This document shows, one piece after another, positions 1,223 through 62,726 of a DNA stretch of 64,000 nucleotides (the stretch's first letter is position 1; each line of letters begins with the position of its first letter). The notes beneath the pieces are model-generated. The model saw only the letters and a program-made list of their open reading frames with translations. It had not been told where the DNA came from and ran no database searches. Both the position numbers and the translations under genes were made by a program. The stretch lies in the IMG/VR virus record IMGVR_UViG_3300043418_000072, positions 290,099 to 354,098 of that record, one strand, 5' to 3'.

Positions 1223-1296
1223 TGGTGCTCCCACTAAGAATCGAACTTAGGACTGCGCTATACCACAGCGCCGATATACCATTTACCTATGAGAGC
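1223..1296 (-). tRNA. tRNA-Thr(GGT)
   Basis: Cloverleaf, stem GCGCT/AGCGC, loop GTGGTAT (unusual G32), TTCGATT, CCA. Confidence 0.75.
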
Positions 1297-1302
1297 AGGT
1301 GT

Positions 1303-2511: not shown

Positions 2512-2527
2512 TATGGCTCCTGTATTA

Positions 2528-2603
2528 TGGTGCCTCTAACCGGATTCGAACCAGTGACACAAGGATTTTCAATCCTCTGCTCTACCAACTGAGCTATAAA
2601 GGC
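2528..2603 (-). tRNA. tRNA-Phe(GAA)
   Basis: Cloverleaf, loop TTGAAAA, CCA. Confidence 0.95.
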
Positions 2604-2706
2604 AAATTTAAATGGCATTGTGGGTTCCTACCACACCTGAACCTTGTTCCACCGCTCGTTCAAAGACTTATGTGGCGATCCCGTGCATTCGCATTACACC
2701 ATACCA

Positions 2707-2818
2707 TATAGAAGCACTCTCAAATGCAGGCATAGGAGGAGTCAAGCTCTGAAACTTTCGCATCTGCAGATACTAGGCTTCTTCTCCCGCTTTGACTTAT
2801 GCCAAGAATACTTCTATA
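2707..2818 (-). ncRNA. Long-stem structured RNA candidate
   Basis: Inverted repeat 2707-2720/2805-2818 plus inner GCATA..GTCAAG / CTTTGACTTATGC helix. Confidence 0.45.
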
Positions 2819-3045
2819 TAGGCTCCACCGTTAACGACAGCATTCGTCCTGGCTTTATTTTATGTCGGTTAATGCACGGTGGACACACATGCCGACGGGG
2901 TTACAGTTTCAATGATGGGATTCGAACCCACTAACTACCCGTGCGCTGCGGGTTGTGCTACGCTCAATATAAAACTGGTTTACTCTGTTTCGAACCAGAC
3001 CAACAGTATATCTTTGCACTATCTTTCCATGTCGTCTTCATTGTT

Positions 3046-3146
3046 ACCATATAGAAACACACTATGTGGAATCGAACCACTGACCCTTTCACTCCGTAGA
3101 GACCGTGCAATACGCTTAGTCGCCGACTAGTATGTTTTTATATGGT
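3046..3146 (-). ncRNA. Long-stem RNA with tRNA T-arm
   Basis: 19-nt inverted repeat (wobble pairs) enclosing GTGG-TTCGATT-CCAC. Confidence 0.55.
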
Positions 3147-3220
3147 AGAAGCACTGGGGCTCGAACCCAGGACCCTCGGATTAAAAGTCCGATGCTCTAA
3201 ACCAACTGAGCTATACTTCC
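3143..3220 (-). tRNA. tRNA-Lys(TTT)
   Basis: Cloverleaf, loop CTTTTAA, CCA. Confidence 0.95.
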
Positions 3221-3227
3221 ATGACCT

Positions 3228-3358
3228 TACCATATCAAAGTACGCTACGGAATCGAACCGCAGTCGTCAACCTTTCCCTCCAGGGCAATTGATACAATTA
3301 TAGCTTCCACAGGAGCGACCTGATTCACTATAATGCACTAGCGTACTTTGATATGGTA
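3228..3358 (-). ncRNA. Long-stem RNA with tRNA T-arm
   Basis: Perfect 20-bp inverted repeat taccatatcaaagtacgcta / tagcgtactttgatatggta; GCGG-TTCGATT-CCGT inside. Confidence 0.6.
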
Positions 3359-3428
3359 GGGGCACAGAGAATCGAACTCTGGTTCTCTGGTTAAAAGCCA
3401 GATACTTTAGCCGCTAAGTTATACCCCC
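3354..3428 (-). tRNA. tRNA-Lys(TTT)
   Basis: Cloverleaf, loop CTTTTAA, CCA. Confidence 0.93.
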
Positions 3429-3431
3429 ATA

Positions 3432-3506
3432 TGGTCCACAGCCAGAGAATCGAACTCTGTTAGCCCGGGTAAGAGCCGGGTACTTCGCCAGCAAAGTTTG
3501 CTGTGG
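3432..3506 (-). tRNA. tRNA-Lys(CTT)
   Basis: Cloverleaf, CCCGG/CCGGG stem, loop CTCTTAC, CCA. Confidence 0.9.
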
Positions 3507-3519
3507 ATGGATTCGTAAA

Positions 3520-3594
3520 TTACTTTTCTTTTACGTGCCATCCAGGACCATACGGGGGTCTAGGATGACACTATCGTTTACCTGAACGTTTCAT
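3520..3594 (-). other. Mini-ORF MKRSGKR-UAG followed by a hairpin (read-through would give MKRSGKR-X-CHPRPPYGPGWHVKEK)
   Basis: AGGA upstream; TAG at 3573-3571; hairpin TGTCATCC/GGATGGCA begins immediately after the TAG. Confidence 0.5.
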
Positions 3595-3608
3595 GACATT
3601 TTTCCTTT

Positions 3609-4280
3609 TTAATTCCAAAGTAAGTCAAAGTTGCCAGCTAACACTTTCTTAACGCTTGCAGTCTTGTCACTTACGTGATCTTTAACTGTATCGTCTTGAA
3701 AGCGGTATGTGCGAATTTTGTCTCCTCGCATCCCTGAACCAACTTGTTGCTTTCTGTTGCTTGCTAAGTTGTTATTATAACAGTCTTTTGTTATCTTGTC
3801 AACTCTTTCTCTAATAGTTTGCATGGCTTCTGCCAAACTATTTTCCCTACTGCGGCACTGTGCTGTTACTACTGTGCCGCTAGGTACGTGCGTAACACGG
3901 GCACTGTTTTGGTGCTTGTTACGGTGTTGTCCTCCTGCGCCTGTTCCGCTGTACCATTCAATCTTCAGATCTGAGTCAAGAATAGCAGTGGTCGGCACAC
4001 TTGGATCAACGACAGCGACAGTAACGGTACTAGTATGTACTCGTCCTTTTCGCTCAGTTGGTGGTACACGCTGTATTCGGTGTCCACCTGGCTCGTTGTA
4101 TAAGCCAGATAAATCAGCACCCTCGACTAAGATATGAACTTCGCCAAGATACTCATTTATCAGGCGGCTAGTTCAGCCCTTGCTGTGTGCAAATTTAATG
4201 TAGGCTTGCGCCAAGTCTTTTACAAATAGTTTACTGTCTTCGCCACCTTCTGCGGCACGGACTTCAATTACACGTTTCAT
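3609..4280 (-). CDS. prfA: RF1-like peptide chain release factor lacking domain 1, with in-frame UGA at codon 36
   Basis: Hand translation: IEVRAAEGG...SKG*TSR...EPGGHRIQRVPPTERKGRVHTS...GAGGQH...GSGMRGDKIRTY; PxT and GGQ motifs; TGA 4175-4173 is in frame with ORF 3609-3998. Confidence 0.9.
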
Positions 4281-4605
4281 ATTCATTTTTCTCTTTTAAT
4301 CGCATAGCTTCTAATCTTGCTTTCAAGAATAGTTCAACTACATCTTTATTTAACTTAGTAAATCCTGTCTTGATTAGAAAGAACAATTCGTCTTTTTCTG
4401 ACTCAAGCCATACCACGTGAGCATCACCTGTATTGCCCACTGCCCCAAGTCCTTCGGGGTTGCTGAATCTCTGTGCCGCGTTACAAATGAACGCAAACTT
4501 TACCCCAAAGTCCCTTGATAGTACTTCTGGACCAGTGGCCTCACCTTGGGCAATCCGGTACACATAGTTGTACTCGTACGGAACGTCAACGTAGACTTTG
4601 TGCAT
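4264..4605 (-). CDS. Hypothetical protein
   Basis: 113-aa ORF packed between phosphatase and RF gene, overlapping both. Confidence 0.65.
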   Translation of the reverse strand: MHKVYVDVPYEYNYVYRIAQGEATGPEVLSRDFGVKFAFICNAAQRFSNPEGLGAVGNTGDAHVVWLESEKDELFFLIKTGFTKLNKDVVELFLKARLEAMRLKEKNEYETCN

Positions 4606-5108
4606 TAGATATCACCTTCGTGGCTTGGGGGTAAAATGATACCACCTGCGCTGTATTGGTATGGTTGACCATTGATTGTTGGCTCTTCGTTCTCATCGTA
4701 TGTCCATCCCAGATGCTTCATCATGCGATGCTTGACTAGCAAGTTAGGAGCACGAAATGCTTCAGTGTCATCAAACCCAAGCATGACCCCAACTTCACAA
4801 ACTGCACCACTGCGGCAAACACCGGCATGGCAGTGAACAATCACGTTCATGCGATTCTCTAGTGCATGTTGCAACAAACGAACTAGCTCCGCAGCTTGCT
4901 CGTGACTGCAACGCATTTCTTCTTCAAGAACGTAGTCCTTTTCCTCTACATCGAGGAACTCAAATTGATGAACTTCTCTAAACTTGTAAAGGGGGGTAGG
5001 ACACTCGCTCCCGCAGTCAACAATTTGAATCAACATAGCGTTATCACCGGGGTTTATGTGAAACCCTTTAGTGACATCGCTACGTGCTACGTTTTGGATC
5101 CAGGGCAT
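4605..5108 (-). CDS. Dual-specificity / tyrosine phosphatase family protein
   Basis: HCHAGVCRS = CX5R loop; start reassigned to MPWIQ (AAGGA RBS). Confidence 0.8.
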   Translation of the reverse strand: MPWIQNVARSDVTKGFHINPGDNAMLIQIVDCGSECPTPLYKFREVHQFEFLDVEEKDYVLEEEMRCSHEQAAELVRLLQHALENRMNVIVHCHAGVCRSGAVCEVGVMLGFDDTEAFRAPNLLVKHRMMKHLGWTYDENEEPTINGQPYQYSAGGIILPPSHEGDI

Positions 5109-5280
5109 TTTGTTTCCTTGTGTTAAATACAGTATGAGCAAACCCAATCCTGGATTCGATGAATTACTTAAACTCGGCAACGGAACTTATTCCAATGCTA
5201 AGAGCTTCTCTTGTGTTAAACATTTTACACGAGATTATCCTGAAAAGCAAGATTTGCCTTTTGTACAGGATATGAAATTC

Positions 5281-5314
5281 TGGCAGAGGATAGTGGAATC
5301 GAACCACTAATGAC
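5281..5314 (-). pseudogene. tRNA 3' half fragment (T-arm + acceptor strand + GCCA)
   Basis: GTCATTAGTGGTTCGATTCCACTATCCTCTGCCA abutting the CCA of tRNA-Gln. Confidence 0.7.
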
Positions 5315-5392
5315 TGGCAGGGGTTATCGGATTCGAACCGATGATACTAATTTCAAAGACTAGTGCTTTAGGCCAAACTAAGCTAAACCCCA
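5315..5392 (-). tRNA. tRNA-Gln(TTG)
   Basis: Loop CTTTGAA, G73, CCA. Confidence 0.88.
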
Positions 5393-5396
5393 ACAA

Positions 5397-5798
5397 TTAT
5401 CTATATTTTTCCAAGTTGTTTAATGTCCATCTACCGACATTTTTACCTTTATTTCTACCAGCAAATGTATCTGTTTGACTATGGCAGTTAGGACATAATA
5501 ATCTTAGATTATCTAGTTTATTATTACTTGAGTCACCGTTTATGTGGTCCACTTGACACTTAATTGGACGACTGGCCCATTCGGATATTCCGCAAGTGGA
5601 ACACTTGTTACCAAATAAACTCATTAACACACTGTATATTGTTGGCCGATTTGTTATTTGCCCATCAACAATAAGTTTTTTATTTTCTGCTAATACCATA
5701 CTAGATTTATGCTGACTCTGGCATGCGTGATTACAATAAACTCTCTCTTGTGTTGAATATCTTGGTATGATTTCTTTTTTACAATTTAAGCATAACAT
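5397..5798 (-). mobile_element. HNH homing endonuclease inserted in tRNA array
   Basis: CSTCG...QVDHINGDSSNNKLDNLRLLCPNCHSQT. Confidence 0.88.
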
Positions 5799-5953
5799 AG
5801 TGTTATTCTCCTTAATTGTATTTATAACGTTGGCTTGATTGTGCCAACGTTATACCAAATTGGTGGACAACCGTTTAACGTCCGATCGCCCAAAGACGGG
5901 GTCTGTGTGCTAACAATTTATCCTATTATACGCCGCTAGCAAAGGCGAGGCTC

Positions 5954-6028
5954 TGGGGAGAAGTACGGGAATCGAACCCGTGATAGCGGAATCACAACCC
6001 GCGGTTTTGCCACTAAACTAACGACTCC
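5954..6028 (-). tRNA. tRNA-His(GTG)
   Basis: Loop TTGTGAT, G-1:C73, CCA. Confidence 0.92.
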
Positions 6029-6035
6029 ATAACTC

Positions 6036-6245
6036 TTAGTCGCGCAACTTTTTCAAGTACTCGCGGCCAATTTTTCCTTCTTCAATTTCTTTCAACACTG
6101 TTGCAGTGATGCCACCAGCGCCACTTACTTTTGCAGCATGTCCTCGCTTGAGTTCACGTGCTCGTGCGCTTGCAATAAGCACTAGATCAAAACGATTACC
6201 AACTTGGTCTACTGCTGCTGCTGAAGTGTTTCTACTATTTGACAT
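6036..6245 (-). CDS. rpoZ: RNA polymerase omega subunit
   Basis: VGNRFDLVLIASARAREL...TVLKEIEEGKI matches the RpoZ signature. Confidence 0.88.
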   Translation of the reverse strand: MSNSRNTSAAAVDQVGNRFDLVLIASARARELKRGHAAKVSGAGGITATVLKEIEEGKIGREYLKKLRD

Positions 6246-6255
6246 AACTACCCTT

Positions 6256-6684
6256 TTAAAAATCTTCCGTAACTTGCTTTAAGCCTTCAATTTGGTCAAG
6301 CTCAAAGTCTTCAATGTGCTTAACTGATCCGCCATAGTAGCCATTGTGGCTGTTACGCACTTCAATGTCAATGTAGCCGCGGTCGGTTTTGATAGTCCAG
6401 AACCCGTCTTGAACTACTTCGTATCCGTCTTCTTCGCGATTATCGCCCCAGCCTTTGTCTTCTGTTTCAGTCACCAATGCGCCACGCAATAGATCAAAGC
6501 TGTTACCTTCACCTAGGATAGTAGCACCATTGATGTGATTGAACCACACGCTGTTGCAACAATCGTTCTGTGTATCAAAACGAAAATACTTGCCGCTAAC
6601 TGTACGGAATACCAATGCCCAGCTGTCGTTGCCTAGAAAGATTCCGTTAATGCGCTCACCGCGCAATACTTTGAATGCTGACAT
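6256..6684 (-). CDS. Hypothetical phage protein
   Basis: ORF; start reassigned to MSAFK (AAGGA RBS) to avoid overlap with tRNA-Arg. Confidence 0.7.
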   Translation of the reverse strand: MSAFKVLRGERINGIFLGNDSWALVFRTVSGKYFRFDTQNDCCNSVWFNHINGATILGEGNSFDLLRGALVTETEDKGWGDNREEDGYEVVQDGFWTIKTDRGYIDIEVRNSHNGYYGGSVKHIEDFELDQIEGLKQVTEDF

Positions 6685-6702
6685 TGTATTTCCTTTGTTG
6701 AT

Positions 6703-6777
6703 TGGTGCGTCTGGATGGAATCGAACCACCATTCCTAAGTTCGTAGCCTAGTGTACTTTCCATTGTACTACAGACGC
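6703..6777 (-). tRNA. tRNA-Arg(ACG)
   Basis: Loop CTACGAA, CCA. Confidence 0.92.
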
Positions 6778-6781
6778 AAAT

Positions 6782-6858
<77 letters not shown>

Positions 6859-6969
6859 AATATGCTTTACAACACTGTGGGCTGTCCACTCAAGTCCGTG
6901 TCAGACATATAGCAGTACACTAAATCTCGTCTACTATACATTCCAGTTTACTGCTGGTTCAGTTAAAAT

Positions 6970-7045
6970 TGGTGGAGAATATCGGACTCGAACCGATCAC
7001 CTACAGCTTGCAAAGCTGCCGCTCTCCCAGATGAGCTAATTCCCC
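6970..7045 (-). tRNA. tRNA-Ala(TGC)
   Basis: Loop TTTGCAA, G3:U70, CCA. Confidence 0.95.
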
Positions 7046-7049
7046 AATT

Positions 7050-7123
7050 TGGATGCGGGTGCAAGATTTGAACTTGCGATGCTCCGAGCTTATGAGACTG
7101 GAGTGGTGGCCGCCCTACCCGCT
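7050..7123 (-). tRNA. tRNA-Met(CAT), atypical (unpaired 1:72, reduced D-arm)
   Basis: Loop CTCATAA, T-arm GCAAG-TTCAAAT-CTTGC, CCA. Confidence 0.7.
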
Positions 7124-7130
7124 ATAACCT

Positions 7131-7204
7131 TGGTGCCCCATAACAGAATCGAACTGCTATCCCCGGATTACAAAACCGGTGTTCTACCATTTAACTAATG
7201 GGGC
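7131..7204 (-). tRNA. tRNA-Thr(TGT)
   Basis: Loop TTTGTAA, CCA. Confidence 0.9.
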
Positions 7205-7210
7205 GAAATT

Positions 7211-7286
7211 TGGCTGGCAAACCTGGGCTCGAACCAGGGACATCTTGATTAACAGTCAAGCGCTCTACCGACTGAGCTATATGCCA
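7211..7286 (-). tRNA. tRNA-Asn(GTT)
   Basis: Loop CTGTTAA, G73, CCA. Confidence 0.95.
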
Positions 7287-7294
7287 ATAACACT

Positions 7295-7323
7295 ATTATA
7301 TATGACACGCACATGCTTGTCAA
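7295..7323 (-). promoter_or_regulatory. Sigma70-type promoter
   Basis: TTGACA-N17-TATAAT. Confidence 0.85.
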
Positions 7324-7330
7324 TAAATTT

Positions 7331-7405
7331 TGGTACCCGATGCAAGATTTGAACTTGCGACCAACGGCTTATCAAGCCGCTGCTCTACCACTGAGCTAAC
7401 CGGGT
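7331..7405 (-). tRNA. tRNA-Ile(GAT)
   Basis: Loop TTGATAA, CCA. Confidence 0.95.
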
Positions 7406-7413
7406 AAATTAAA

Positions 7414-7618
7414 TTTGTAAGTAGTTGAGCCGCTGTTATCTCAACGCTTCACCCGAATTAACTAGTCCGGACGGGGGCAGTCTGCCACTAGGAATACTTG
7501 TCCAGTACAGCCTCCAAATGGCCCGCGCACGGTGGGATTCGAACCCATTAACCTTTTACTAAACAACACCTTCGAAGAATATTGAATAGCGTGACGTTCT
7601 CTTGCTGACACTTACAAA
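7414..7618 (-). ncRNA. About 205-nt structured RNA with terminal stem and internal T-arm
   Basis: TTTGTAAGT/ACTTACAAA ends; TGGG-TTCGAAT-CCCA; CTAGT/ACTAG and other helices. Confidence 0.55.
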
Positions 7619-7620
7619 AC

Positions 7621-7696
7621 TGGCGCCGTGGACGGGAATCGAACCCGCCTAGGTCTCATCGACAGTGAGGTGCCCTACCCAGAGAGCTACCACGGC
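7621..7696 (-). tRNA. tRNA-Asp(GTC)
   Basis: Loop CTGTCGA, G73, CCA. Confidence 0.92.
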
Positions 7697-7703
7697 ATTA
7701 ACT

Positions 7704-7778
7704 TGGAGCGGGTAGTCGGTATCGAGCCGACTACTCAAGTTTGGAAGACTAGTGTGTATCCGTAAACACCTTACCCGC
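7704..7778 (-). tRNA. tRNA-Gly(TCC)
   Basis: Loop CTTCCAA, CCA. Confidence 0.92.
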
Positions 7779-7785
7779 TAAAACT

Positions 7786-7872
7786 TGGAGGATAGAAACA
7801 GAATCGAACTGTTACCGCTTTCGCAGTAGATCGGTTTAGCAAACCAACTCGGCACCATGCACACTACTATCC
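7786..7872 (-). tRNA. tRNA-Ser(GCT)
   Basis: Loop TTGCTAA, long variable arm, CCA. Confidence 0.88.
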
Positions 7873-7877
7873 ATAAC

Positions 7878-7953
7878 TGGCATCCTGTACGGGAATCGAA
7901 CCCGTCTCTACAACTTGAAAGGCTGTTGATCTAAACCGATAATCTAACAGGAT
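7878..7953 (-). tRNA. tRNA-Glu(TTC)
   Basis: Loop CTTTCAA, CCA. Confidence 0.9.
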
Positions 7954-7960
7954 ATAAAAC

Positions 7961-8037
7961 TGGCGCCTCGTATCGGGCTCGAACCGACGGCCTCAACAGT
8001 GACAGTGTTGCGCTCTAACCAACTGAGCTAACGAAGC
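7961..8037 (-). tRNA. tRNA-Asp(GTC)
   Basis: Loop CTGTCAC, CCA. Confidence 0.95.
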
Positions 8038-8044
8038 ATAAATT

Positions 8045-8378
8045 TCGAGGAGCATCATTCTTGAGGACTCTTACCCCACCCTTTTGCTCACGCTGTTGTT
8101 CACTGCGATTGCCACCATGCTCCCTCGCTGGCGGGTGTTTACTTTGTGGCTCTTGCTTTCCACTTGATTCTGTTAGTTCAAGGAATACACGGCGTTAAAC
8201 TAACCCACAAACTAGATGTGGTGATTAACTTCTGTCCTTGTTGCAGTCTTTCCGCTAACAATACTTTTCCTTACCCTACTGGACCGACTTTGCTTATCGT
8301 TCGTCACTTTCGTGAAGCCCGGGAAGTCTCTCCCGGGTCGGTTTCCGTCTACTCTAGTACTCACTATTGTCTTAGTGT
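8045..8378 (-). ncRNA. About 330-nt structured RNA candidate
   Basis: No credible ORF; helices CGAGGGAGCAT/ATGCTCCTCG, CCCGGGA/TCCCGGG, TCAC-GAAA-GTGA. Confidence 0.5.
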
Positions 8379-8380
8379 TT

Positions 8381-8466
8381 TGGTGGGGATAGTTAGATTC
8401 GAACCAACTCATCCAGTGGAAACAGATTTACAGTCTGCCGCGCCTCTCCAACTGCGCCGTATCCCC
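8381..8466 (-). tRNA. tRNA-Tyr(GTA)
   Basis: Loop CTGTAAA, long variable arm, CCA. Confidence 0.95.
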
Positions 8467-8478
8467 ATTATTTCTTTA

Positions 8479-8658
8479 TGCTGTTAAGGCTGATATCTAA
8501 TAAACCCTACTAGGAATCGAACCTAGGCCCCCGACGGATTATGCCGGTGTGCGTCCACTACACTATAGAGACTCCCTCCTCTTTCGCTCGGCAAAGCTAC
8601 ACGAATTGAGGTTAGATTTCAGACTGCTTTCAGATTGCCGTCATCAGCCTTAACAACA
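8479..8658 (-). ncRNA. Long-stem RNA enclosing a CCA-less tRNA-like cloverleaf
   Basis: 16-nt terminal inverted repeat; D-like GTG-TAGTGGAC-GCAC; CTAGG-TTCGATT-CCTAG. Confidence 0.55.
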
Positions 8659-8664
8659 CAAACT

Positions 8665-8734
8665 TGGCGCCCCTAACAGGAATCGAACCTGTCTACGTTC
8701 GGCTTCAAATCCGACTCGCAACTCAGTCCGGGGC
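8665..8734 (-). tRNA. Atypical 70-nt tRNA (vestigial D-arm, 8-nt anticodon loop ATTTGAAG; identity unclear)
   Basis: GCCCC/GGGGC acceptor, ACAGG-TTCGATT-CCTGT, G73, CCA. Confidence 0.55.
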
Positions 8735-8744
8735 ATAAACTTAT

Positions 8745-8889
8745 GTACATCAGCGGGATTCGAACCCGCACACATCACCCGAACATACCGCATTGTTAGC
8801 GGCTTACACATCCTAGGCCACTGGCCTTTACTGTCGATGTCCTACTTAGTGTTATGGGTAATGCTCTCCCAATTGATAGTATGACGCAC
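8745..8889 (-). ncRNA. tRNA-like RNA with about 70-nt branched insert replacing the anticodon loop
   Basis: Acceptor GTGCGTCA/TGATGTAC, D-arm, CATTACC/GGTGATG, GCGGG-TTCGAAT-CCCGC; no encoded CCA. Confidence 0.65.
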
Positions 8890-8963
8890 GAAATAGAAAC
8901 ACATTGCTAGTTTCGCCTTGAGCCGACTTTAAAATCAGATGCGGTTTAAGCAATGTGAAAACT

Positions 8964-9103
8964 TGGTGTAGTAATTGGGACTTGAACCCAACTAGTTATC
9001 TGTTTTTACAAACGGGTGATATCACTTCCCATCGCCATATGCCCCTCGGGTTTGCAATCCTGCTACGCACACAGTCAAATAACCTGTCAACCTAACTTAC
9101 CAC
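8964..9103 (-). ncRNA. Miniature tmRNA-like RNA (140 nt)
   Basis: GTGGTAA/TTACTAC with G3:U70, A73, CCA; stemless D-loop GTTAGGTTGACA; helix GGTTATTTG/CAGATAACT; TTGGG-TTCAAGT-CCCAA. Confidence 0.65.
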
Positions 9104-9110
9104 AAAAACT

Positions 9111-9185
9111 TGGAAGAGCTACGGGGAATCGAACCCCGCTTGCCTGGATGAAAACCAGATGTCCTAACCGATAGACGATAGCTCC
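9111..9185 (-). tRNA. tRNA-Glu(TTC)
   Basis: Loop TTTTCAT, CCA. Confidence 0.93.
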
Positions 9186-9186
9186 A

Positions 9187-9269
9187 CTATATGTAAACAC
9201 AATACTCATCCGCTTTACGCTAATATCACTTTAGGCGATTTGATTGTTCGGCATTGTGTTTGCATATAG
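9187..9269 (-). ncRNA. Long-stem RNA candidate
   Basis: 17-nt inverted repeat ctatatgtaaacacaat / attgtgtttgcatatag. Confidence 0.5.
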
Positions 9270-9369
9270 AGCCCTGTAACTTGTACAGGGATATATGACA
9301 GTATCTTTTTAAAGACTGTTAGCATTACAGTACGATCACTGCGCTGCGTTGTTTGTTTAACATGTATGT

Positions 9370-9398
9370 ATTATAGTACCAATTTCTTTATTGGACAA
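9370..9398 (-). promoter_or_regulatory. Sigma70-type promoter
   Basis: TTGTCC-N17-TATAAT; shares downstream ACAYACATGTTAA with the 9465 promoter. Confidence 0.7.
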
Positions 9399-9464
9399 CT
9401 GTTATTTTCTAACTGTTGTTTTTATGCTACTCTACACTTTATGCTAATTTCTTAACATGTGTGT

Positions 9465-9493
9465 ATTATAGCACCCATTTCATTAAGTGTCAA
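9465..9493 (-). promoter_or_regulatory. Sigma70-type promoter
   Basis: TTGACA-N17-TATAAT. Confidence 0.85.
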
Positions 9494-9496
9494 ATT

Positions 9497-9573
9497 TGGT
9501 ACCCCTGGCTGGATTCGAACCTGCAACCAAAAGATTTTAAGTCTGTCCGCACTACCAATTAGCGTACAGGGGC
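9497..9573 (-). tRNA. tRNA-Leu(TAA), short variable loop
   Basis: Loop CTTAAAA, A73, CCA. Confidence 0.85.
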
Positions 9574-9576
9574 ATA

Positions 9577-9653
9577 TGGTACCTTCGGGCGGATTCGAAC
9601 CCCCAACCAACAGTTTCTAAAACTATCCGCACTACCAATTAGCGTACGAAGGC
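9577..9653 (-). tRNA. tRNA-Leu(TAG), short variable loop
   Basis: Loop TTTAGAA, A73, CCA. Confidence 0.85.
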
Positions 9654-9661
9654 ATTGTATG

Positions 9662-9918
9662 TGGCTTCGTTAGCAGGACTCGAACCTGCGACCCGGGGCT
9701 TAAATCGCGTATGCTGGGTGCCCCGTGAGTTTCCAAAAGTTACCCTCACATCCCCTCAATGCCTTATCTCACTTTTCACACATTTCAACCTGTCCCGCAC
9801 TTCCCGGGCTCACAGTGTTTGGTTTTAAAGCCTACGCGATTGTTATCTACTTTGTGCTACTAGATGTATTATCTCATCTACTCAATGCTGCTCTACCTTC
9901 TCTCTACTCTATAACGAA
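9662..9918 (-). ncRNA. 257-nt tRNA-like RNA with large insert and probable pseudoknot
   Basis: Acceptor TTCGTTA/TAACGAA, G73, CCA; GCAGG-TTCGAGT-CCTGC; CGGGGC/GCCCCG; AATCGCGTA/TACGCGATT. Confidence 0.65.
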
Positions 9919-9925
9919 ATAAACT

Positions 9926-10002
9926 TGGTACCCCGTGTCTGATTCGAACAGACAGCCAACTCCTTTTGAGAGAATCCGCACTACCAATTAGCGTAACGGG
10001 GC
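9926..10002 (-). tRNA. tRNA-Leu(CAA), short variable loop
   Basis: Loop CTCAAAA, A73, CCA. Confidence 0.85.
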
Positions 10003-10012
10003 ATTTAAATTT

Positions 10013-10088
10013 TGGTGCAACCTCCAGGGATCGAACCTGGTTCAATGGCTCTTCAGACCACCGCTATGACCACATCAGCTAAAGTTGC
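10013..10088 (-). tRNA. tRNA-Phe(GAA)
   Basis: Loop CTGAAGA, CCA. Confidence 0.9.
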
Positions 10089-10091
10089 ATT

Positions 10092-10166
10092 TGGTAGTTC
10101 CTAGTGGTGTCGAACCACCGACCTCTACAATGTCAATGTAGCGTTCTACCGCTGAACTAAGGAACT
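10092..10166 (-). tRNA. tRNA-Val(GAC)
   Basis: Loop TTGACAT, CCA. Confidence 0.93.
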
Positions 10167-10173
10167 ATAAAAC

Positions 10174-10247
10174 TGGCACGGGAACCGGGGCTCGAACCCG
10201 GAACGACAGAGTCAAAGTCTGTTGTGTTACCATTACACCATCCCCGA
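10174..10247 (-). tRNA. tRNA-Gln(TTG)
   Basis: Loop CTTTGAC, G73, CCA. Confidence 0.92.
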
Positions 10248-10255
10248 ACAAAAAT

Positions 10256-10334
10256 TGGACACTGTGGTGTAAGTTGCAGTACACATTACTAACTATTTGC
10301 AAGGCTACACATAGCGGCCCCGCTTAACACAGTG
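10256..10334 (-). tRNA. Atypical tRNA-like RNA, possibly Cys
   Basis: Perfect CACTGTG/CACAGTG, U73, CCA; TTGCAAA segment; non-canonical D and T arms. Confidence 0.45.
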
Positions 10335-10342
10335 ATAAAAAT

Positions 10343-10514
10343 TGGAGTCTAGTGCTGTTGTGACACAGCAACATCCCTTGAGCGAGAGCGTAGGAACTAA
10401 ATCTACGGGTTTAACACCTCTTGGGTTGAACAGTCAGGACAATTACTTTGTAAGCGTACTAAACAGCGCCTGTTCAGAGCGCTCCCTTTGGGTTACTTTC
10501 ATTTCCAACTAGAC
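10343..10514 (-). ncRNA. 172-nt tRNA-like RNA
   Basis: GTCTAGT/ACTAGAC + U + CCA; adjacent GCTGT-GTCACA-ACAGC T-arm analogue. Confidence 0.5.
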
Positions 10515-10519
10515 ATAAT

Positions 10520-10598
10520 TGGCTCCGAGTGTGGGAATCGAACCCACCTAACCACTGATTAACAGTCAGGTCCCTGCACCTTGCTTGGATTTCTCGGA
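10520..10598 (-). tRNA. tRNA-Asn(GTT)
   Basis: Loop CTGTTAA, G73, CCA. Confidence 0.9.
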
Positions 10599-10604
10599 AT
10601 AACT

Positions 10605-10680
10605 TGGTGCCCCAGTCCGGAATCGAACCGACTTCTCCTGCTTACAAGACAGGACCTCATCCATTAAAGGTTTCAAGGGC
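10605..10680 (-). tRNA. tRNA-Thr(TGT)
   Basis: Loop CTTGTAA, CCA. Confidence 0.88.
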
Positions 10681-10685
10681 ATATA

Positions 10686-10762
10686 TGGCATACCAGGAGA
10701 GATTCGAACTCCCATCACGCAATTTTGGAGACTGCTGTTCTGCCAATTGGAACTACTGGTAT
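10686..10762 (-). tRNA. tRNA-Trp(CCA) with U11-A24
   Basis: ATACCAG TA GTTC CAATTGGCA GAAC A GCAGT CTCCAAA ATTGC; G73, CCA. Confidence 0.93.
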
Positions 10763-10769
10763 ATAAACT

Positions 10770-10853
10770 TGGTGGATACTGTAGGAATCGAACCTACTCA
10801 CTTTACGAACTGGGTTACAGCCAGCCACACCTCTCCAACTGTGTCGAGTATCC
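10770..10853 (-). tRNA. tRNA-Tyr(GTA)
   Basis: Loop CTGTAAC, long variable arm, CCA. Confidence 0.93.
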
Positions 10854-10861
10854 ATTAACTT

Positions 10862-10935
10862 TGGTACCTGGTACAAGAATCGAACTTGTGATAAAGGCTT
10901 ATCAAGCCTCCGTTATACCATTTAACTAACCAGGT
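10862..10935 (-). tRNA. tRNA-Ile(GAT)
   Basis: Loop TTGATAA, CCA. Confidence 0.93.
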
Positions 10936-10941
10936 AAAATT

Positions 10942-11030
10942 TGGCGGGGAGATAGTAGAATCGAACTCTAACCACTTTCGCAGTCCATCGGTTTTCAAGA
11001 CCGTGACAGGCCCAGCCTGCATAACTCCCC
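10942..11030 (-). tRNA. tRNA-Ser(TGA)
   Basis: Loop CTTGAAA, long variable arm, G73, CCA. Confidence 0.88.
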
Positions 11031-11035
11031 GTGAT

Positions 11036-11109
11036 TGGTCTGGGTAGCTGGAATCGAACCAGCGCCTCGAGTATCCAAGACTCGTCGACTACCATTATCC
11101 TATACCCAG
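11036..11109 (-). tRNA. tRNA-Pro(TGG)
   Basis: Loop CTTGGAT, CCA. Confidence 0.92.
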
Positions 11110-11116
11110 ATTATTT

Positions 11117-11191
11117 TGGTGGAGGCCGGGGGTATCGAACCCCTCTAGACAATCTACGTGCAAGGCAGATCCGCAGCCCTCTGCTGCCCCC
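11117..11191 (-). tRNA. tRNA-Ala(TGC), reduced D-arm
   Basis: Loop CTTGCAC, G3:U70, A73, CCA. Confidence 0.8.
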
Positions 11192-11200
11192 ATAAAAGGT

Positions 11201-11347
11201 TTTTGAGAGCCCAACTATCCTCCTGGGAGGACTCACTGGATTGTCTCGTATGGACGAGTTTATCAACCACTATAGCAGCCTGGCGTTATCATGTAGTAGA
11301 CACTACACTATGCTATGTGGGACTCAAGTCCTACGTCTATCTCAAAA
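11201..11347 (-). ncRNA. Structured RNA candidate
   Basis: TTTTGAGA/TCTCAAAA ends; GGAC-TTGA-GTCC, CTCGT/ACGAG, TCCTCC/GGAGGA hairpins. Confidence 0.4.
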
Positions 11348-11349
11348 CT

Positions 11350-11424
11350 TGGTGGATGTAGCTAGATTCGAACTAGCGATAGTTACCGTATGAAGGTAGT
11401 GCATTACCACTTTGCTATACATCC
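11350..11424 (-). tRNA. tRNA-Met or Ile2 (CAT)
   Basis: Loop TTCATAC, A73, CCA. Confidence 0.88.
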
Positions 11425-11504
11425 AAATATATTCCTTAAGGTTTCCGGCGCTGGGCTCGGACATAGTATAGAATCAGAATCTATCTATCATCGTCATCCT
11501 TAAG

Positions 11505-11602
11505 GTATTCATAAACAAACTAGTGGGTCGCTGCCAAAAAATATGTTTCAAATATATTCTAGTCTTCTAGTTTGTTTGTGAATACCCTGTATTGCTACAG
11601 GA
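11505..11602 (-). ncRNA. CCTGT hairpin plus 19-bp long-stem RNA candidate
   Basis: gtattcataaacaaactag / ctagtttgtttgtgaatac; same layout as 9187-9292. Confidence 0.45.
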
Positions 11603-11746
11603 TATGTTAGGGTCGATACCCTAACCAGTTATTTGTACTCTGCTGTTACCGCCAGCATTTCATCCAACTGTCCGCCCGTTTAAAGATTATTATAGTGTTC
11701 TTTCAGGTCCTCGTTACCTGGGCATATAGCACTTATCTAACACTGT

Positions 11747-11899
11747 CTATGCGTGAAGTGAAAACTTTTTACGGCTTTCTAGTTCCTTCCTTGCACGTTC
11801 TAACTTTTCTTGAATCAACGTATTACGTTGTTCTGTTGTTAGCGTATGCTCGGCAGTAAACTTTACTTCACGAATTCTTTTATTAAAGTCTACCTTCAA
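11747..11899 (-). CDS. Small 50-aa protein (TTG start; KVDFNKRIREVKFTAEHTLTTEQRNTLIQEKLERARKELESRKKFSLHA)
   Basis: AAGGA RBS directly after the terminator U-tract; below ORF-track cutoff. Confidence 0.55.
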   Translation of the reverse strand: MKVDFNKRIREVKFTAEHTLTTEQRNTLIQEKLERARKELESRKKFSLHA

Positions 11900-11917
11900 A
11901 AATTTCTTCCTTAAAAC

Positions 11918-11947
11918 AAAAAACCCTAGGGTTTTTAATCCTAGGGT
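11918..11947 (-). terminator. Intrinsic terminator of candidate attenuator
   Basis: ACCCTAGG-ATTAAAAAC-CCTAGGGT + TTTTT. Confidence 0.85.
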
Positions 11948-11973
11948 CCTTTAAGTTTGTTAGCTACTACTTG

Positions 11974-12123
11974 TTAAGCGTAACCACTTCCCTCTAAGAA
12001 CCCTAAACTAATCTCCGGTGCGCGATCATTCGTATTCAAACTAAACGACATCCCTGACCAATAGGCCACTGTGCCTAAGGTAGACTGTTGTTGTTTAAGT
12101 GAATGAAGAATGTTTTGCATCAT
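11974..12123 (-). CDS. Candidate leader peptide, 49 aa (MMQNILHSLKQQQSTLGTVAYWSGMSFSLNTNDRAPEISLGFLEGSGYA)
   Basis: ATG 6 nt after the -10 box (leaderless); codons 40-43 complementary to the terminator 5' arm. Confidence 0.65.
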   Translation of the reverse strand: MMQNILHSLKQQQSTLGTVAYWSGMSFSLNTNDRAPEISLGFLEGSGYA

Positions 12124-12129
12124 GTTAGT

Positions 12130-12158
12130 ATTGTATGTTTATTTACCTTTGTTGTCAA
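12130..12158 (-). promoter_or_regulatory. Sigma70-type promoter with nested TAAATA
   Basis: TTGACA-N17-TACAAT; TAAATA at 12145-12140. Confidence 0.85.
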
Positions 12159-12233
12159 CCTCTTTAACAACATCTGGTAAATTTATTTATCTTTTTGTTT
12201 AAACTTTCGTTTCTTTGTTTGTTACAAGCCTCA

Positions 12234-12262
12234 ATTGTATGACACTTGTCTTTCTGTGTCAA
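12234..12262 (-). promoter_or_regulatory. Sigma70-type promoter
   Basis: TTGACA-N17-TACAAT. Confidence 0.8.
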
Positions 12263-12279
12263 CTACAACTTTTACCATT

Positions 12280-12363
12280 TGGTGCGAGAGACGGGACTCG
12301 AACCCGTAAGCCTTTCGGCGGCAGATTTTAAGTCTGCTGTGTATACCATTCCACCACTCTCGC
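12280..12363 (-). tRNA. tRNA-Leu(TAA), long variable arm
   Basis: Loop CTTAAAA, CCA. Confidence 0.95.
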
Positions 12364-12372
12364 GATACTTCT

Positions 12373-12401
12373 ATTATATATGCTTAACACAAGAGTGTCA
12401 A
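12373..12401 (-). promoter_or_regulatory. Sigma70-type promoter
   Basis: TTGACA-N17-TATAAT. Confidence 0.85.
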
Positions 12402-12411
12402 GCAATTTGTT

Positions 12412-12486
12412 TGGTCCGGCGTGCAGGAATCGAACCCACATTCGCAAGGTAGAAGCTTGCTGTACTATCCATTGTACTAACGCCAG
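12412..12486 (-). tRNA. tRNA-Arg(TCT)
   Basis: Loop CTTCTAC, CCA. Confidence 0.92.
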
Positions 12487-12491
12487 AAATT

Positions 12492-12566
12492 TGGTGCACC
12501 AACTTGGAATTGAACCAAGACTCAACCGATTATGAGTCGGCTGCTTTACCATTAAGCTATTGGTGC
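12492..12566 (-). tRNA. tRNA-Ile2/Met(CAT), Ile2-like
   Basis: CGACTCATAATCG anticodon arm, CCA. Confidence 0.88.
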
Positions 12567-12590
12567 ATAACGAACATTATAACTAATTGA

Positions 12591-13364
12591 TCATTGCGTG
12601 TCAACTGTGTTTAGCGTCTCGTTAAGAAAAATTTTAACTCTGTCCCTTGATACGGCATTTGCATCTGCGTTATACCCATAGGCACATTGTGTTCCCTTCC
12701 AGCACACTGCACTTCCGCTACCATAGCTGTCAAATGCGTGGTGTGTATTTTCGTAATAATTGTACTTAGCATCTTTAAAGTTTTCAGACTGGGCTAATGC
12801 TTTGCAGCGATCTGCCGCTGCCCATTCGTCGCTAAGACCTATATGTATTTGCAGCGGTATTGCTAGTTTGCGTTCAGCAATCGGTTCTCTACAGGTCGGA
12901 TAGTAGGCCACTGCACTTGCAAATACGCCCGAATCGTCTGATGCAATCAGCAACGAAGTTATGCCACCTAAGGAAAACCCGATCACCGACACCTTCCCGT
13001 TGCTCCACGGTTGCTGTTTAACCCACTTGCCAACTGCTATTGCATCTTGTACTGTATTGTAGGAATATGACGAGTTACCCTTAATTGAGCATATATTCGA
13101 CAGTCCGCGGGTGCTAAATGAGTCAATCACTATTGCATTGTACCCTGCATCGTCAATGTATCGTGCCCAGTCATGATAGTGCATGTTTCGCGGGCCGTTG
13201 CATCCATTCAGTAGGAGCACTGTGCCCCGTTTGGCTTTTTCGTTGACTCGCAGAGACAGGCTAGCTTCGTAGTCGGTGTTATCAACCTGCACTGATACCG
13301 CATTGCAATAAGTTGCAAATAAGGCTAGCGAAAGTAATACTAAAGTTTTACGCATTTTGATCAT
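12591..13364 (-). CDS. Dienelactone hydrolase-family alpha/beta hydrolase with signal peptide
   Basis: GFSLGG elbow, D and HAFD triad residues, AVAYYP; hydrophobic N-terminus. Confidence 0.8.
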   Translation of the reverse strand: MIKMRKTLVLLSLALFATYCNAVSVQVDNTDYEASLSLRVNEKAKRGTVLLLNGCNGPRNMHYHDWARYIDDAGYNAIVIDSFSTRGLSNICSIKGNSSYSYNTVQDAIAVGKWVKQQPWSNGKVSVIGFSLGGITSLLIASDDSGVFASAVAYYPTCREPIAERKLAIPLQIHIGLSDEWAAADRCKALAQSENFKDAKYNYYENTHHAFDSYGSGSAVCWKGTQCAYGYNADANAVSRDRVKIFLNETLNTVDTQ

Positions 13365-15786: not shown

Positions 15787-16023
15787 TTAATCTTCGTACC
15801 CAGAATCAATGTCGTCTTCGTCGTCCTCAAACCCTGCTGCATATTCTTTATATGCACGGCCGAGTGCTGCATCTGTGCCGCTAAACTCTTTCAGCGAAAC
15901 GTCGTCGAGTGCGTCAACTAGCAACCCCATAAGATTATCTGCTGCTTCCTGGCGATCCTTAACAGGAATGTACTGTTTTAAAATTGTGTACACTTCACTT
16001 AGTACATCTGCTTCAATGCTCAT
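15787..16023 (-). CDS. Small acidic hypothetical protein
   Basis: 78-aa ORF in operon. Confidence 0.7.
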   Translation of the reverse strand: MSIEADVLSEVYTILKQYIPVKDRQEAADNLMGLLVDALDDVSLKEFSGTDAALGRAYKEYAAGFEDDEDDIDSGYED

Positions 16024-16951
16024 TTGATTTCCTTAATTTTGTTAACGGTATTAGTTTACGATCCATCTTTAGTCCGGCACATGCAAAAACACATAACGGT
16101 CTAGGCTGGGTATTTATTTCACTAGCGATATCCAGTTGTTCTGTTTCTTCAATGGTGTCAAATCCAATAGGATCAAACCTATCATCAAAAGGATCAAAGT
16201 GGCAGCACAAAGTGTACTTTCCGCTAGCTGTTATATATAGCCCAGGAGCCTCAAGGTGGGCACAATTCTTTGTACTTAGCTTTTGCTCATGGTTCACTCT
16301 GAAGTTAAAGGTTTGATCTTTTGTCCAAGGCTCAAGAATAAACTCTTCGCCTGTACGGTAGTTTCGTGCCGTTTCAACATTGCGCACTCCTTCAACTAAT
16401 TCAAAGTCTGCAAATTTTAACTGATTCGCTAGCTTAATGCAAGCATTAAGTTGGTGCTCGTTGTGCTTGAATGGAATAAATTGCCAAACTGCTTTGCCGC
16501 CTGCGTTGATAAATGCTGTTGCGTTTTCAATTACTTTGTTAAAGTCAGTGCCCTGTCTATATATCTCGTGGACTCCTGCTAGGCCATCAATCCCAAACCA
16601 GACTCTATGATCTGTATTGCTTAACTTGCGGCCGATTTCCGCCCACCAGTCTGCATTTCGCACACTTCCATTTGTGTGGATCGTAATCTGTTTCACTCGC
16701 GGGATAGTCCAGTCAAGGATTTCACTCAAGTCTGGGTGAATAGCCGGATCTCCGTAGCGACCGCAGAACTGTACTTTGGTCAAACCAGGCAATGCGTCAA
16801 TTGCAGTGCGTAGCTTGTCAACTACTAGATTCTGCGGTACCAGGCCGTCTTTGAGGCCAAATCCATTTTTATTTCGAGCACAACTAGGACACCAAGCATT
16901 ACATTTTGAGCTTAGTTCGACATGTAAGCTCTTGATGTCCTTTAGTAGCAT
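16013..16951 (-). CDS. Radical SAM protein
   Basis: CNAWCPSC; C-terminal Cys cluster. Confidence 0.85.
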   Translation of the reverse strand: MLLKDIKSLHVELSSKCNAWCPSCARNKNGFGLKDGLVPQNLVVDKLRTAIDALPGLTKVQFCGRYGDPAIHPDLSEILDWTIPRVKQITIHTNGSVRNADWWAEIGRKLSNTDHRVWFGIDGLAGVHEIYRQGTDFNKVIENATAFINAGGKAVWQFIPFKHNEHQLNACIKLANQLKFADFELVEGVRNVETARNYRTGEEFILEPWTKDQTFNFRVNHEQKLSTKNCAHLEAPGLYITASGKYTLCCHFDPFDDRFDPIGFDTIEETEQLDIASEINTQPRPLCVFACAGLKMDRKLIPLTKLRKSNEH

Positions 16952-61811: not shown

Positions 61812-62726
61812 TTAGGCGTTAGCAATTTGAACAGTAGTGTTCAATGTAGCTGCATCAAATGTCCAACGTACCATTGTACCGTCATCAAACTCATGCCCGG
61901 CTGTACCGTATTGTGTCAACAATGCGTTGTGGCTAGTTAGCTTGGTAACATAGTAAGTCTTGCCGCTGCTGTCTGTAGCAGTAATACTCATTTCTCCTAC
62001 TGCTGCTGGTGTAGCTGCAACTAAAGAACATACTGCTGTACCTTCGCTAGTTGTGACGCGATAGCGGTGGCTACCTTTTTGTGCGTTAATATCAGCAACT
62101 AAGCTGTTACTAGTTACGTAAGCGTAAGCAAGGATAGCATTTTCTTGGTTTGTTGCAGAACCAACATCACCACTGTCAGTTGTTAATGTAATAGTGTTTA
62201 CTGTAATACCACCACGGTTTGTGTACGACACTGTTGGTGCTGCTGTGTAGCCAGAACCTTTGTTAGTAACTGTCACTGATAATGCACCGTATGTTAATAC
62301 TGGAACTGCACCAGTACCTGTACCACCAGAAACGCCAGTTACCGCGCTCAATGCAGTAAACGAGCCTGCGGTTGTAACGCTGTTAACGGTAACAACTGCA
62401 CCACCAGCATCGGAAGTTACGTTAAGAACTGCTGAACCGCCTGCTGTAGTGACTGTTAAGTCAAATGTTTGTGCGTTACCATATCCTGTACCACCTGAAA
62501 TTGTGGCGCTAATTACTTTAGACACAATAACACCGGTTGCTGTTACGCCGCCTGGTAGTTGTGGTGCCGAAAATGTAATTGTTGGTAATGTAGTAGTATA
62601 CGAACCAGCAACCGATACTGCTGCACTTGCTAGGCCTTCACCGCCGATGCCATCATCTGCTGTGTAACCACCGTTGGTACCGACGTTACGGTTACCGAAA
62701 AATCTTTTTGCTAAAGGACGTCCCAT
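61812..62726 (-). CDS. Virion structural protein
   Basis: MGRPLAKRFFG; G/T/A-rich. Confidence 0.65.
   Translation of the reverse strand: MGRPLAKRFFGNRNVGTNGGYTADDGIGGEGLASAAVSVAGSYTTTLPTITFSAPQLPGGVTATGVIVSKVISATISGGTGYGNAQTFDLTVTTAGGSAVLNVTSDAGGAVVTVNSVTTAGSFTALSAVTGVSGGTGTGAVPVLTYGALSVTVTNKGSGYTAAPTVSYTNRGGITVNTITLTTDSGDVGSATNQENAILAYAYVTSNSLVADINAQKGSHRYRVTTSEGTAVCSLVAATPAAVGEMSITATDSSGKTYYVTKLTSHNALLTQYGTAGHEFDDGTMVRWTFDAATLNTTVQIANA

Follow-up and report, generated by a model that had tools for sequence, protein, structure and literature searches.

A tRNA-Trp with the Hirsh-type U11-A24 pair and a release-factor-1-like gene with a conserved in-frame UGA in a 354-kb freshwater phage

The stretch of DNA analysed here (henceforth the window) comprises the last 64 kb of a 354,098-bp virus record rated complete, and all coordinates refer to the window unless stated otherwise. 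ARAGORN revealed 37 tRNA genes between 1223 and 12566, all on the minus strand, and one of them is a tRNA-Trp. Profile searches (Pfam, PHROGs, NCBIfam and Rfam), a scan for consensus promoters and direct reading of the sequence gave the following features:

1223-12566, minus strand: array of 37 co-oriented tRNA genes interleaved with small ORFs and the RF1-like gene (a translation module).
10686-10762, minus strand: tRNA-Trp (anticodon CCA), trpT-like, with an encoded CCA end, G73 and A1-U72.
10737-10753, minus strand: D-arm of this tRNA, with stem GUUC (10750-10753)/GAAC (10737-10740), U11 (10752) paired to A24 (10738), and a 9-nt loop with one extra C.
10726-10728, minus strand: anticodon CCA in the loop CUCCAAA, which keeps the A36-A37-A38 motif needed for i6A/ms2i6A37 and for UGA wobble by E. 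coli tRNA-Trp.
3609-4286, minus strand: RF1-like release-factor gene lacking domain 1, with an ATG at 4286 (relatives start at the ATG at 4280), a TAA stop at 3609-3611, a PxT motif (PPT) at 4056-4064 and GGQ at 3927-3935.
4173-4175, minus strand: in-frame TGA of the RF1-like gene at the conserved Trp codon of RF1 (context GGC UGA ACU).
4109-4160, minus strand: tentative conserved RNA stem starting 12 nt 3' of the UGA (4147-4160 pairs with 4109-4122; 24-nt loop), AU-rich and weak.
12130-12158, minus strand: nearest upstream sigma-70-like promoter (11/12 match) before the tRNA block holding tRNA-Trp.
11912-12123, minus strand: 49-codon ORF (11974-12123, one Trp codon) followed by a hairpin (11923-11947) and a T-run (11912-11922).
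7295-7323, minus strand: perfect 12/12 TTGACA-17-TATAAT promoter, the nearest strong promoter upstream of the RF gene; others of the same kind lie at 12576-12604, 12373-12401, 9465-9493 and 3774-3802 (the last inside the 3' part of the RF gene), and five perfect matches in 11 kb are far more than expected by chance.

A sequence-only reading had described the tRNA as carrying the Hirsh-suppressor U11-A24 pair in a GTTC/GAAC D-stem with anticodon CCA, in a window without a TCA-anticodon tRNA, and this observation proved correct. ARAGORN calls tRNA-Trp(cca), and Rfam's tRNA model (RF00005) scores it 49.9 bits against a gathering score of 29. Read on its own strand, it consists of acceptor AUACCAG, U8 A9, D-stem GUUC, the 9-nt D-loop CAAUUGGCA, D-stem GAAC, anticodon stem GCAGU/AUUGC, loop CUCCAAA, variable loop GUGAU, T-arm GGGAG-UUCGAAU-CUCUC, G73 and an encoded CCA. 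The free-energy fold alone does not return a cloverleaf (z = -0.44), which is usual for tRNAs and is outweighed by the covariance-model and ARAGORN calls. The anticodon stem has five base pairs (G27-C43, C28-G42, A29-U41, G30.U40 and U31-A39), as does that of a second copy (see below), unlike the 4-bp stem with unpaired 27-43 of the Blastocrithidia-like UGA reader. The G73 discriminator and the CCA anticodon are TrpRS identity elements, from which we predict that the tRNA can be charged by the host.

The nearest GenBank match is enterobacterial chromosomal trpT (83.6% identity over positions 7-67). On alignment with a Salmonella trpT, the D-arm, T-arm, variable loop and anticodon loop are trpT-like, and the D-arm (GUUC/GAAC against GUUC/GAGC) differs only by G24 to A, one inserted C after position 13 and U to C at position 20. 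'Hirsh-type' is thus literally accurate with respect to sequence. None of the 37 tRNAs in the window, the 50 in the whole genome, the 45 of a complete relative (G001, see below) or those of the related loci has a tca anticodon, so no cognate opal suppressor was found. Inspection of the whole genome revealed a second tRNA-Trp(CCA) with an identical D-arm at genome 287208-287284, 2.8 kb outside the window and missed by the sequence-only reading, and an amber-suppressor tRNA(CUA) at genome 174391-174465.

We next examined the RF gene. Pfam PCRF (PF03462) and RF-1 (PF00472) domains, both above cut-off, map to about 3675-4313 on the minus strand. The two pieces flanking the TGA, searched separately, match prfA model positions 115-146 and 164-342; RF1 is the best family (NCBIfam prfA 155.6 bits), ahead of RF2 (prfB, 95.8) and PrfH (41.7). 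The score falls below the prfA equivalog cut-off of 400 and the gene starts at model position ~115, as it does in all relatives, so that N-terminal domain 1 is absent whereas the PxT and GGQ motifs are present. An upstream ORF (4264-4605) was considered as a frameshifted domain 1 and rejected, since it has no family match, is not helical-looking and lacks a slippery site. The best PDB hits are RF1, and a database homologue aligned to solved RF1 structures places the TGA on the conserved Trp (T. maritima ERKGWNLEV, E. coli EARRWRVEI).

To determine whether the TGA is conserved, we scanned IMG/VR with the downstream piece and found 316 relatives. In all 79 informative loci of the best 80 (67-100% identity) the codon is TGA, while the neighbouring codons drift synonymously. 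A more distant homologue found by chance (G015, 51% identity) also has TGA, and its use as a query gave 64 of 64 further informative loci with TGA, even though the residues after the site differ completely. In the non-redundant total, 112 of 113 distinct genes (51-100% identity) have TGA, the exception being a 41%-identity outgroup with TTT (Phe), whereas other Trp residues in the same genes use TGG (2.1 per gene). Database proteins of 222-226 aa showing W at the site are not genuine TGG variants: they were called with code 4, and their DNA has TGA. Variation is dominated by the third codon position on both sides of the TGA (entropy 0.56/0.44/1.29 upstream and 0.57/0.29/0.91 downstream), so one frame is translated throughout. 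Contigs of an RNA library cover the gene without any difference, and divergent strains in two other metatranscriptomes cross the site with many differences elsewhere and none at 4173-4175, although such libraries can contain DNA and contigs drop rare variants. The TGA is also present in contigs of independent metagenomic runs. An assembly error or pseudogene is rejected by this conservation, the synonymous drift around the site and the independent runs.

The TGA does not reflect a change of the genetic code. TGA terminates 122 of 396 crudely called genes (31%), with short downstream extensions (median 10 codons), and the gains in ORF coverage from making any one stop 'sense' are similar, which speaks against genome-wide code 4 or code 15. 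We then examined 826 in-frame stops with at least 35 stop-free codons on each side. A first screen was swamped by shadow frames of conserved genes, but after filtering for ORFs in other frames only the RF TGA was conserved as a stop in the complete relative G001, crossed by protein homology (74.6% identity, E 5e-33) and free of a long ORF in another frame. The RF gene's own terminator is TAA in 67 of 69 distinct genes, against 63% genome-wide. Searches of the genome found no tRNA-Sec, SelB or TrpRS.

A stem starting 12 nt after the UGA has some covariation support: RNAalifold and pair counts on 57 relatives gave 95% of cells paired and 29 double-change cells, against 7.9 +/- 2.2 in shuffles and at most 7 when slid. 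However, it is weak, and it is not evident or conserved in sequence in the deeper clade.

The sequence-only reading had further inferred that this tRNA supplies the read-through of the UGA, and this interpretation is only partly supported. In support, with no UCA tRNA and no Sec machinery in the genome, near-cognate tRNA-Trp(CCA) is the only plausible decoder, and all 10 large contigs of the clade carry a tRNA-Trp in the same array and orientation as the RF gene. We sampled tRNA-Trp with a pattern independent of the D-arm and found U11-A24 in 1 of 104 bacterial tRNA-Trp, where C11-G24 dominates, in 28 of 90 viral tRNA-Trp, and in 13 of 15 tRNA-Trp next to TGA-RF genes, rising to 18 of 21 with the deeper loci. 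This led us to reject our initial assumption that A24 is the common natural state of bacterial tRNA-Trp. In the same clade loci 34% of 802 non-Trp tRNAs have U-A, and tRNA-Trp (86%) is the highest of all families (His 75%, Arg 68%); among GC-matched viral tRNA-Trp the figure is 17 of 56 (30%). The pair is kept while neighbouring D-stem pairs vary. The enrichment, which is not corrected for shared ancestry, is therefore real, and pure AT-drift is only partly adequate as an explanation since the enrichment survives GC matching and within-locus controls. Nonetheless, U-A at 11-24 is common in phage tRNAs of many specificities (16 of 50 in this genome), and on large contigs alone the contrast is 8/10 against 5/12 (p = 0.10).

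Strict co-occurrence of A24 with the TGA-interrupted RF gene, which had been put forward as a test, was rejected in both directions. A24 is not needed: G001 (364,247 bp, terminal repeats, complete) has the TGA-RF and 45 tRNAs, but a single tRNA-Trp with the trpT-like U11.G24, and two further relatives with the same UGA target, G015 and L059, have C11-G24. Neither is A24 specific: the phages G012 (complete), G013 (99% complete) and G014 lack any RF1-like gene yet have U-A tRNA-Trp, in G012 and G013 with the same D-arm as in the window. The cultured Pseudomonas phage Psa21, considered here for its tRNA only, also has A24. None of these data show that the phage tRNA, and not that of the host, does the decoding.

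The proposed cascade from an attenuator through tRNA-Trp to RF1 is not supported. Upstream of the tRNA block holding tRNA-Trp lie, in order, the 11/12 promoter, the 49-codon ORF and the hairpin with its T-run (11912-11947), probably the putative attenuator of the sequence-only reading. The ORF has a single Trp codon and no tandem Trp codons, nothing ties this arrangement to tryptophan, and tRNA-Trp and the RF gene sit behind different consensus promoters.

Published work suggests how the UGA could be read. Native E. coli tRNA-Trp(CCA) inserts Trp at UGA when RF2 is weakened (about 80% of residues), which requires the A36-A37-A38/ms2i6A37 context kept by the phage tRNA (PMC11903333); prfB mutations raise UGA read-through in B. 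subtilis from 6% to 19-54% (PMC7918605); and G24A gives a pre-bent tRNA with faster forward rates that is accepted faster on near-cognate codons (PMC11805395, PMC13092985). The most economical reading, which we hold with moderate confidence, is kinetic competition at the UGA between host RF2 and Trp-tRNA-Trp. In this view, ribosomes either terminate, giving a 37-aa dead-end peptide, or insert Trp through near-cognate pairing of tRNA-Trp(CCA) (C34 opposite A), giving the full ~225-aa factor, and only the latter would be functional. Output of the factor would depend on the ratio of Trp-tRNA-Trp to RF2 activity. The stop is almost certainly read through on purpose, and the invariance of TGA over TGG indicates that the stop property itself is selected and hence that the site is regulatory. 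The phage tRNA-Trp genes, in an array that appears to be driven by sigma-70 consensus promoters, should raise read-through by mass action as infection proceeds; the A24 form probably does so more efficiently but is dispensable, making the phage tRNA a helper and not an obligatory dedicated decoder. The motifs of the RF1-like protein predict UAA/UAG specificity, and 63% of the phage's genes end in TAA. Our analysis establishes the anatomy of the tRNA, the conservation, position and uniqueness of the UGA, the standard use of TGA as a stop elsewhere, and the absence of a UCA tRNA, tRNA-Sec, SelB and TrpRS from the genome. By contrast, that Trp is inserted, that read-through is regulatory and that the phage tRNA contributes, including any charging and increased UGA decoding by it, are inferences from sequence without protein-level evidence, for a host that can be placed only as probably Proteobacteria from the nearest cultured relatives.

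Other explanations fit less well. That the A24 tRNA is the dedicated and necessary decoder at the end of an attenuator cascade draws on the enrichment and constancy of A24, the shared array and orientation, and the documented Hirsh effect, but is unlikely given G001, G015 and L059, the A24 D-arm in RF-less phages, the single Trp codon of the leader-like ORF and the separate promoters. It is somewhat less doubtful, though still not favoured, that the phage tRNA has nothing to do with the UGA and supplies ordinary UGG decoding like the other ~49 tRNAs, with A24 an inherited lineage trait and host tRNA-Trp alone reading the UGA. These phages carry near-complete tRNA sets, U-A is common in their tRNAs, RF-less phages have the same tRNA, and wild-type tRNA-Trp reads UGA in E. 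coli; yet the U-A fraction of tRNA-Trp exceeds that of every other family in the clade and of viral and bacterial tRNA-Trp, and extra tRNA-Trp must shift the competition with RF2 by mass action.

It is very unlikely that the UGA is a true stop, yielding a 37-aa peptide and/or a downstream part made separately by re-initiation (a split or N-terminally truncated factor). Although gene callers using the standard code predict 172-187-aa products starting after the TGA, no start codon is conserved there (the following codons are ACU, GCU, AAA, CUG, AUC and others), the 36 upstream codons are under strong purifying selection in the same frame and form an integral part of RF1 domain 2, and the stop falls exactly on a conserved Trp. 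A general late switch to TGA = Trp, as proposed for Jade phages, with the RF1-like gene as part of the machinery, is less likely still. RF1 is found in TGA-recoded Jade phages, and the huge phage LR745206 has a domain-1-less RF1-like gene with two in-frame TGAs at non-Trp positions, but here TGA ends 31% of genes, no other conserved in-frame TGA exists in 354 kb, there is no UCA suppressor or TrpRS, other Trp codons in the RF genes are TGG, and an absence of in-frame TGAs from structural or lysis genes of clade members is already largely the case. Selenocysteine or another non-Trp residue is a remote possibility: a hairpin about 12 nt downstream of a UGA is reminiscent of bacterial SECIS spacing, but the phage genome has no tRNA-Sec or SelB, the position is Trp in cellular RF1s, and the stem is AU-rich and not SECIS-like in conservation.

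Compared with the Hirsh suppressor (E. coli trpT G24A, su+9), the phage tRNA shares the unchanged CCA anticodon, the GUUC/GAAC D-stem with U11-A24 in place of U11.G24, and a trpT-like T-arm, variable loop and anticodon loop, but it is a natural phage allele with one extra D-loop C, of unknown effect, and different acceptor and anticodon stems. The RF gene resembles prfB, whose autoregulatory +1 frameshift likewise involves an RF2-specific UGA that is almost never replaced, so that expression depends on competition between RF2 and an alternative decoding event. Here, however, both parts are in one frame, the context is GGN UGA R/C without a CUU-U slippery site or upstream SD element, and the gene is phage-encoded, lacks domain 1 and is RF1-type, so that RF2 would control a different factor (cross-regulation). 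In phage Q-beta (coat to A1 protein), and at leaky UGA in E. coli and B. subtilis, tRNA-Trp(CCA) inserts Trp in competition with RF2 and a purine often follows the stop, but in Q-beta read-through extends a complete protein at its natural end, whereas here the UGA replaces an internal, structurally conserved Trp. The code-change module of Jade phages (RF1, TrpRS and UCA suppressor tRNA) also clusters a phage RF1 with tRNA genes, but it is written in the standard code and serves genome-wide TGA recoding; this phage lacks TrpRS and a UCA suppressor, and its only conserved in-frame TGA is in the RF gene itself. PrfH also lacks the N-terminal domain while keeping the codon-recognition and GGQ domains, but the phage protein is much closer to RF1 (41.7 bits with the prfH model TIGR03072, cut-off 166.65), keeps the RF1 PxT motif, and the genome has no RtcB (no PF01139 match).

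Programmed recoding in release-factor genes is so far known only as the prfB +1 frameshift, and a survey of more than 12,000 bacterial genomes found none in prfA. Phage RF1/RF2 genes are known, but we found no description of a UGA-interrupted phage RF1 in a literature search whose incomplete coverage precludes proof of novelty. The gene family described here, in standard-code phages with a nearly invariant UGA at a Trp codon (112/113), would thus be a natural, sequence-defined case of regulatory stop-codon read-through in bacterial viruses that is open to direct reporter testing. The A24, G24 and C11-G24 forms of tRNA-Trp within one phage clade also supply a natural allelic series for asking whether the 50-year-old Hirsh effect is used in nature. 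By UvsX the phage is related to Rak2/GAP32/CBB/Atu_ph07-like jumbo myoviruses of Proteobacteria, none of which appeared among the phage records listed with an RF1 match. A bolder possibility, not excluded but tentative, is that a widespread family of jumbo phages, relatives of Rak2/GAP32-like myoviruses of Proteobacteria, gates synthesis of a domain-1-less RF1 by programmed UGA read-through, as a cross-regulatory counterpart of prfB autoregulation in which low RF2 activity and/or high Trp-tRNA-Trp switches on a phage UAA/UAG-specific release factor. Natural Hirsh-type tRNA-Trp genes in the same promoter-rich array would then have been selected as the phage-supplied activator, giving a translational timer or sensor of the host's termination capacity during infection.

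Gene callers either split this gene or silently translate it with code 4, so that its annotation in public databases is inconsistent and short contigs carrying it may be mistaken for recoded genomes. The RF1-like gene of LR745206 has Phe at this site and its two TGAs elsewhere, which looks like a globally recoded genome, and a full-length prfA-hemK pair in a record labelled as an Acinetobacter phage has TGG.

A tRNA with anticodon CUA, labelled 'Pyl' by ARAGORN but of the amber-suppressor type, lies outside the window at genome positions 174391-174465 (-) and is conserved in the complete relative G001 (363408-363482). Moreover, in deeper clade loci (L360-L425), five CUA tRNAs and one UUA tRNA lie near the RF1-like gene. 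The presence of a UAG suppressor alongside a UAG/UAA-specific release factor looks antagonistic. TAG ends only 26 of 396 genes, and no in-frame TAG gene was found. Another translation-rescue element of these phages is a permuted tmRNA-like gene, located outside the window at genome positions 179583-179981 (-) and at 361980-362523 in G001, that is conserved in both genomes (tags ANDSQFLMVA / ANDSVFALAA).

We next considered the surroundings of the tRNA array and the RF gene and the rest of the window, where the following features were noted:
12576-12604, 12373-12401, 9465-9493, 7295-7323 and 3774-3802 (-), perfect 12/12 sigma-70 consensus promoters (TTGACA-17-TATAAT)
4605-5180 (-), dual-specificity-phosphatase-like ORF
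4264-4605 (-), 113-aa ORF with no family match
311-1207, 1303-2511 and 16013-16951 (-), a flavin TIM-barrel protein and two radical-SAM enzymes
62724-62803 (-), match to the 'freshwater-2' cis-regulatory RNA motif

The five perfect promoters, along with two 11/12 matches, are all co-oriented with the tRNA array and are far more than chance allows. One of them lies inside the 3' part of the RF gene, upstream of three tRNA-Lys genes. Directly upstream of the RF gene are the phosphatase-like ORF, which rests on weak Pfam matches only (DSPc / Tc-R-P), and the 113-aa ORF, whose stop overlaps the RF start by 20 nt in another frame. The flavin TIM-barrel protein (NMO/DHO_dh-like, possibly a dihydrouridine-synthase-like enzyme) and one radical-SAM enzyme sit inside the tRNA array, while the second radical-SAM enzyme lies just upstream of it. 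They are candidate tRNA-modifying enzymes that could influence decoding. The 'freshwater-2' motif, found with Rfam at 55.9 bits against a gathering score of 49.9, lies upstream of a 304-aa ORF (61812-62726).

Inspection of tRNA-Trp genes next to TGA-interrupted RF genes in related loci revealed two further arrangements that bear on the D-arm. In locus L382, two tRNA-Trp(CCA) genes (2914-2989 and 2994-3068) lie in tandem, 4 nt apart, next to a TGA-RF gene; one has C11-G24 and the other U11-A24, and they thus form a natural pair differing in the state of position 24. In locus L006, a tRNA-Trp next to a TGA-RF gene (5070-5148) has C at position 9 and an odd D-stem (UUCU/AGAU). A9C is the other classical D-arm change that promotes UGA reading by tRNA-Trp.

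In one relative (L324 84-755 and L325 47-718), the RF gene ends TGG TGA TAA, such that TGA serves as the terminator, with an immediate TAA backup, in the same gene that needs an internal TGA read through. By contrast, TAA is the terminator in 67 of 69 genes across the close clade. The 635-kb huge phage LR745206 (L429; LR745206.1 47179-49515, reverse complement) has a domain-1-less RF1-like gene with a PPT motif and GGQ, but with Phe at the site studied here and two in-frame TGAs at non-Trp positions, suggesting a TGA-recoded genome whose RF1 gene is itself written in the altered code. Finally, members of this RF family in public protein databases (P0001-P0120) are stored either as 172-187-aa fragments that start after the TGA, or as 222-226-aa proteins translated with code 4 on short contigs. 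Their annotation is therefore inconsistent and may mislead genetic-code predictors.
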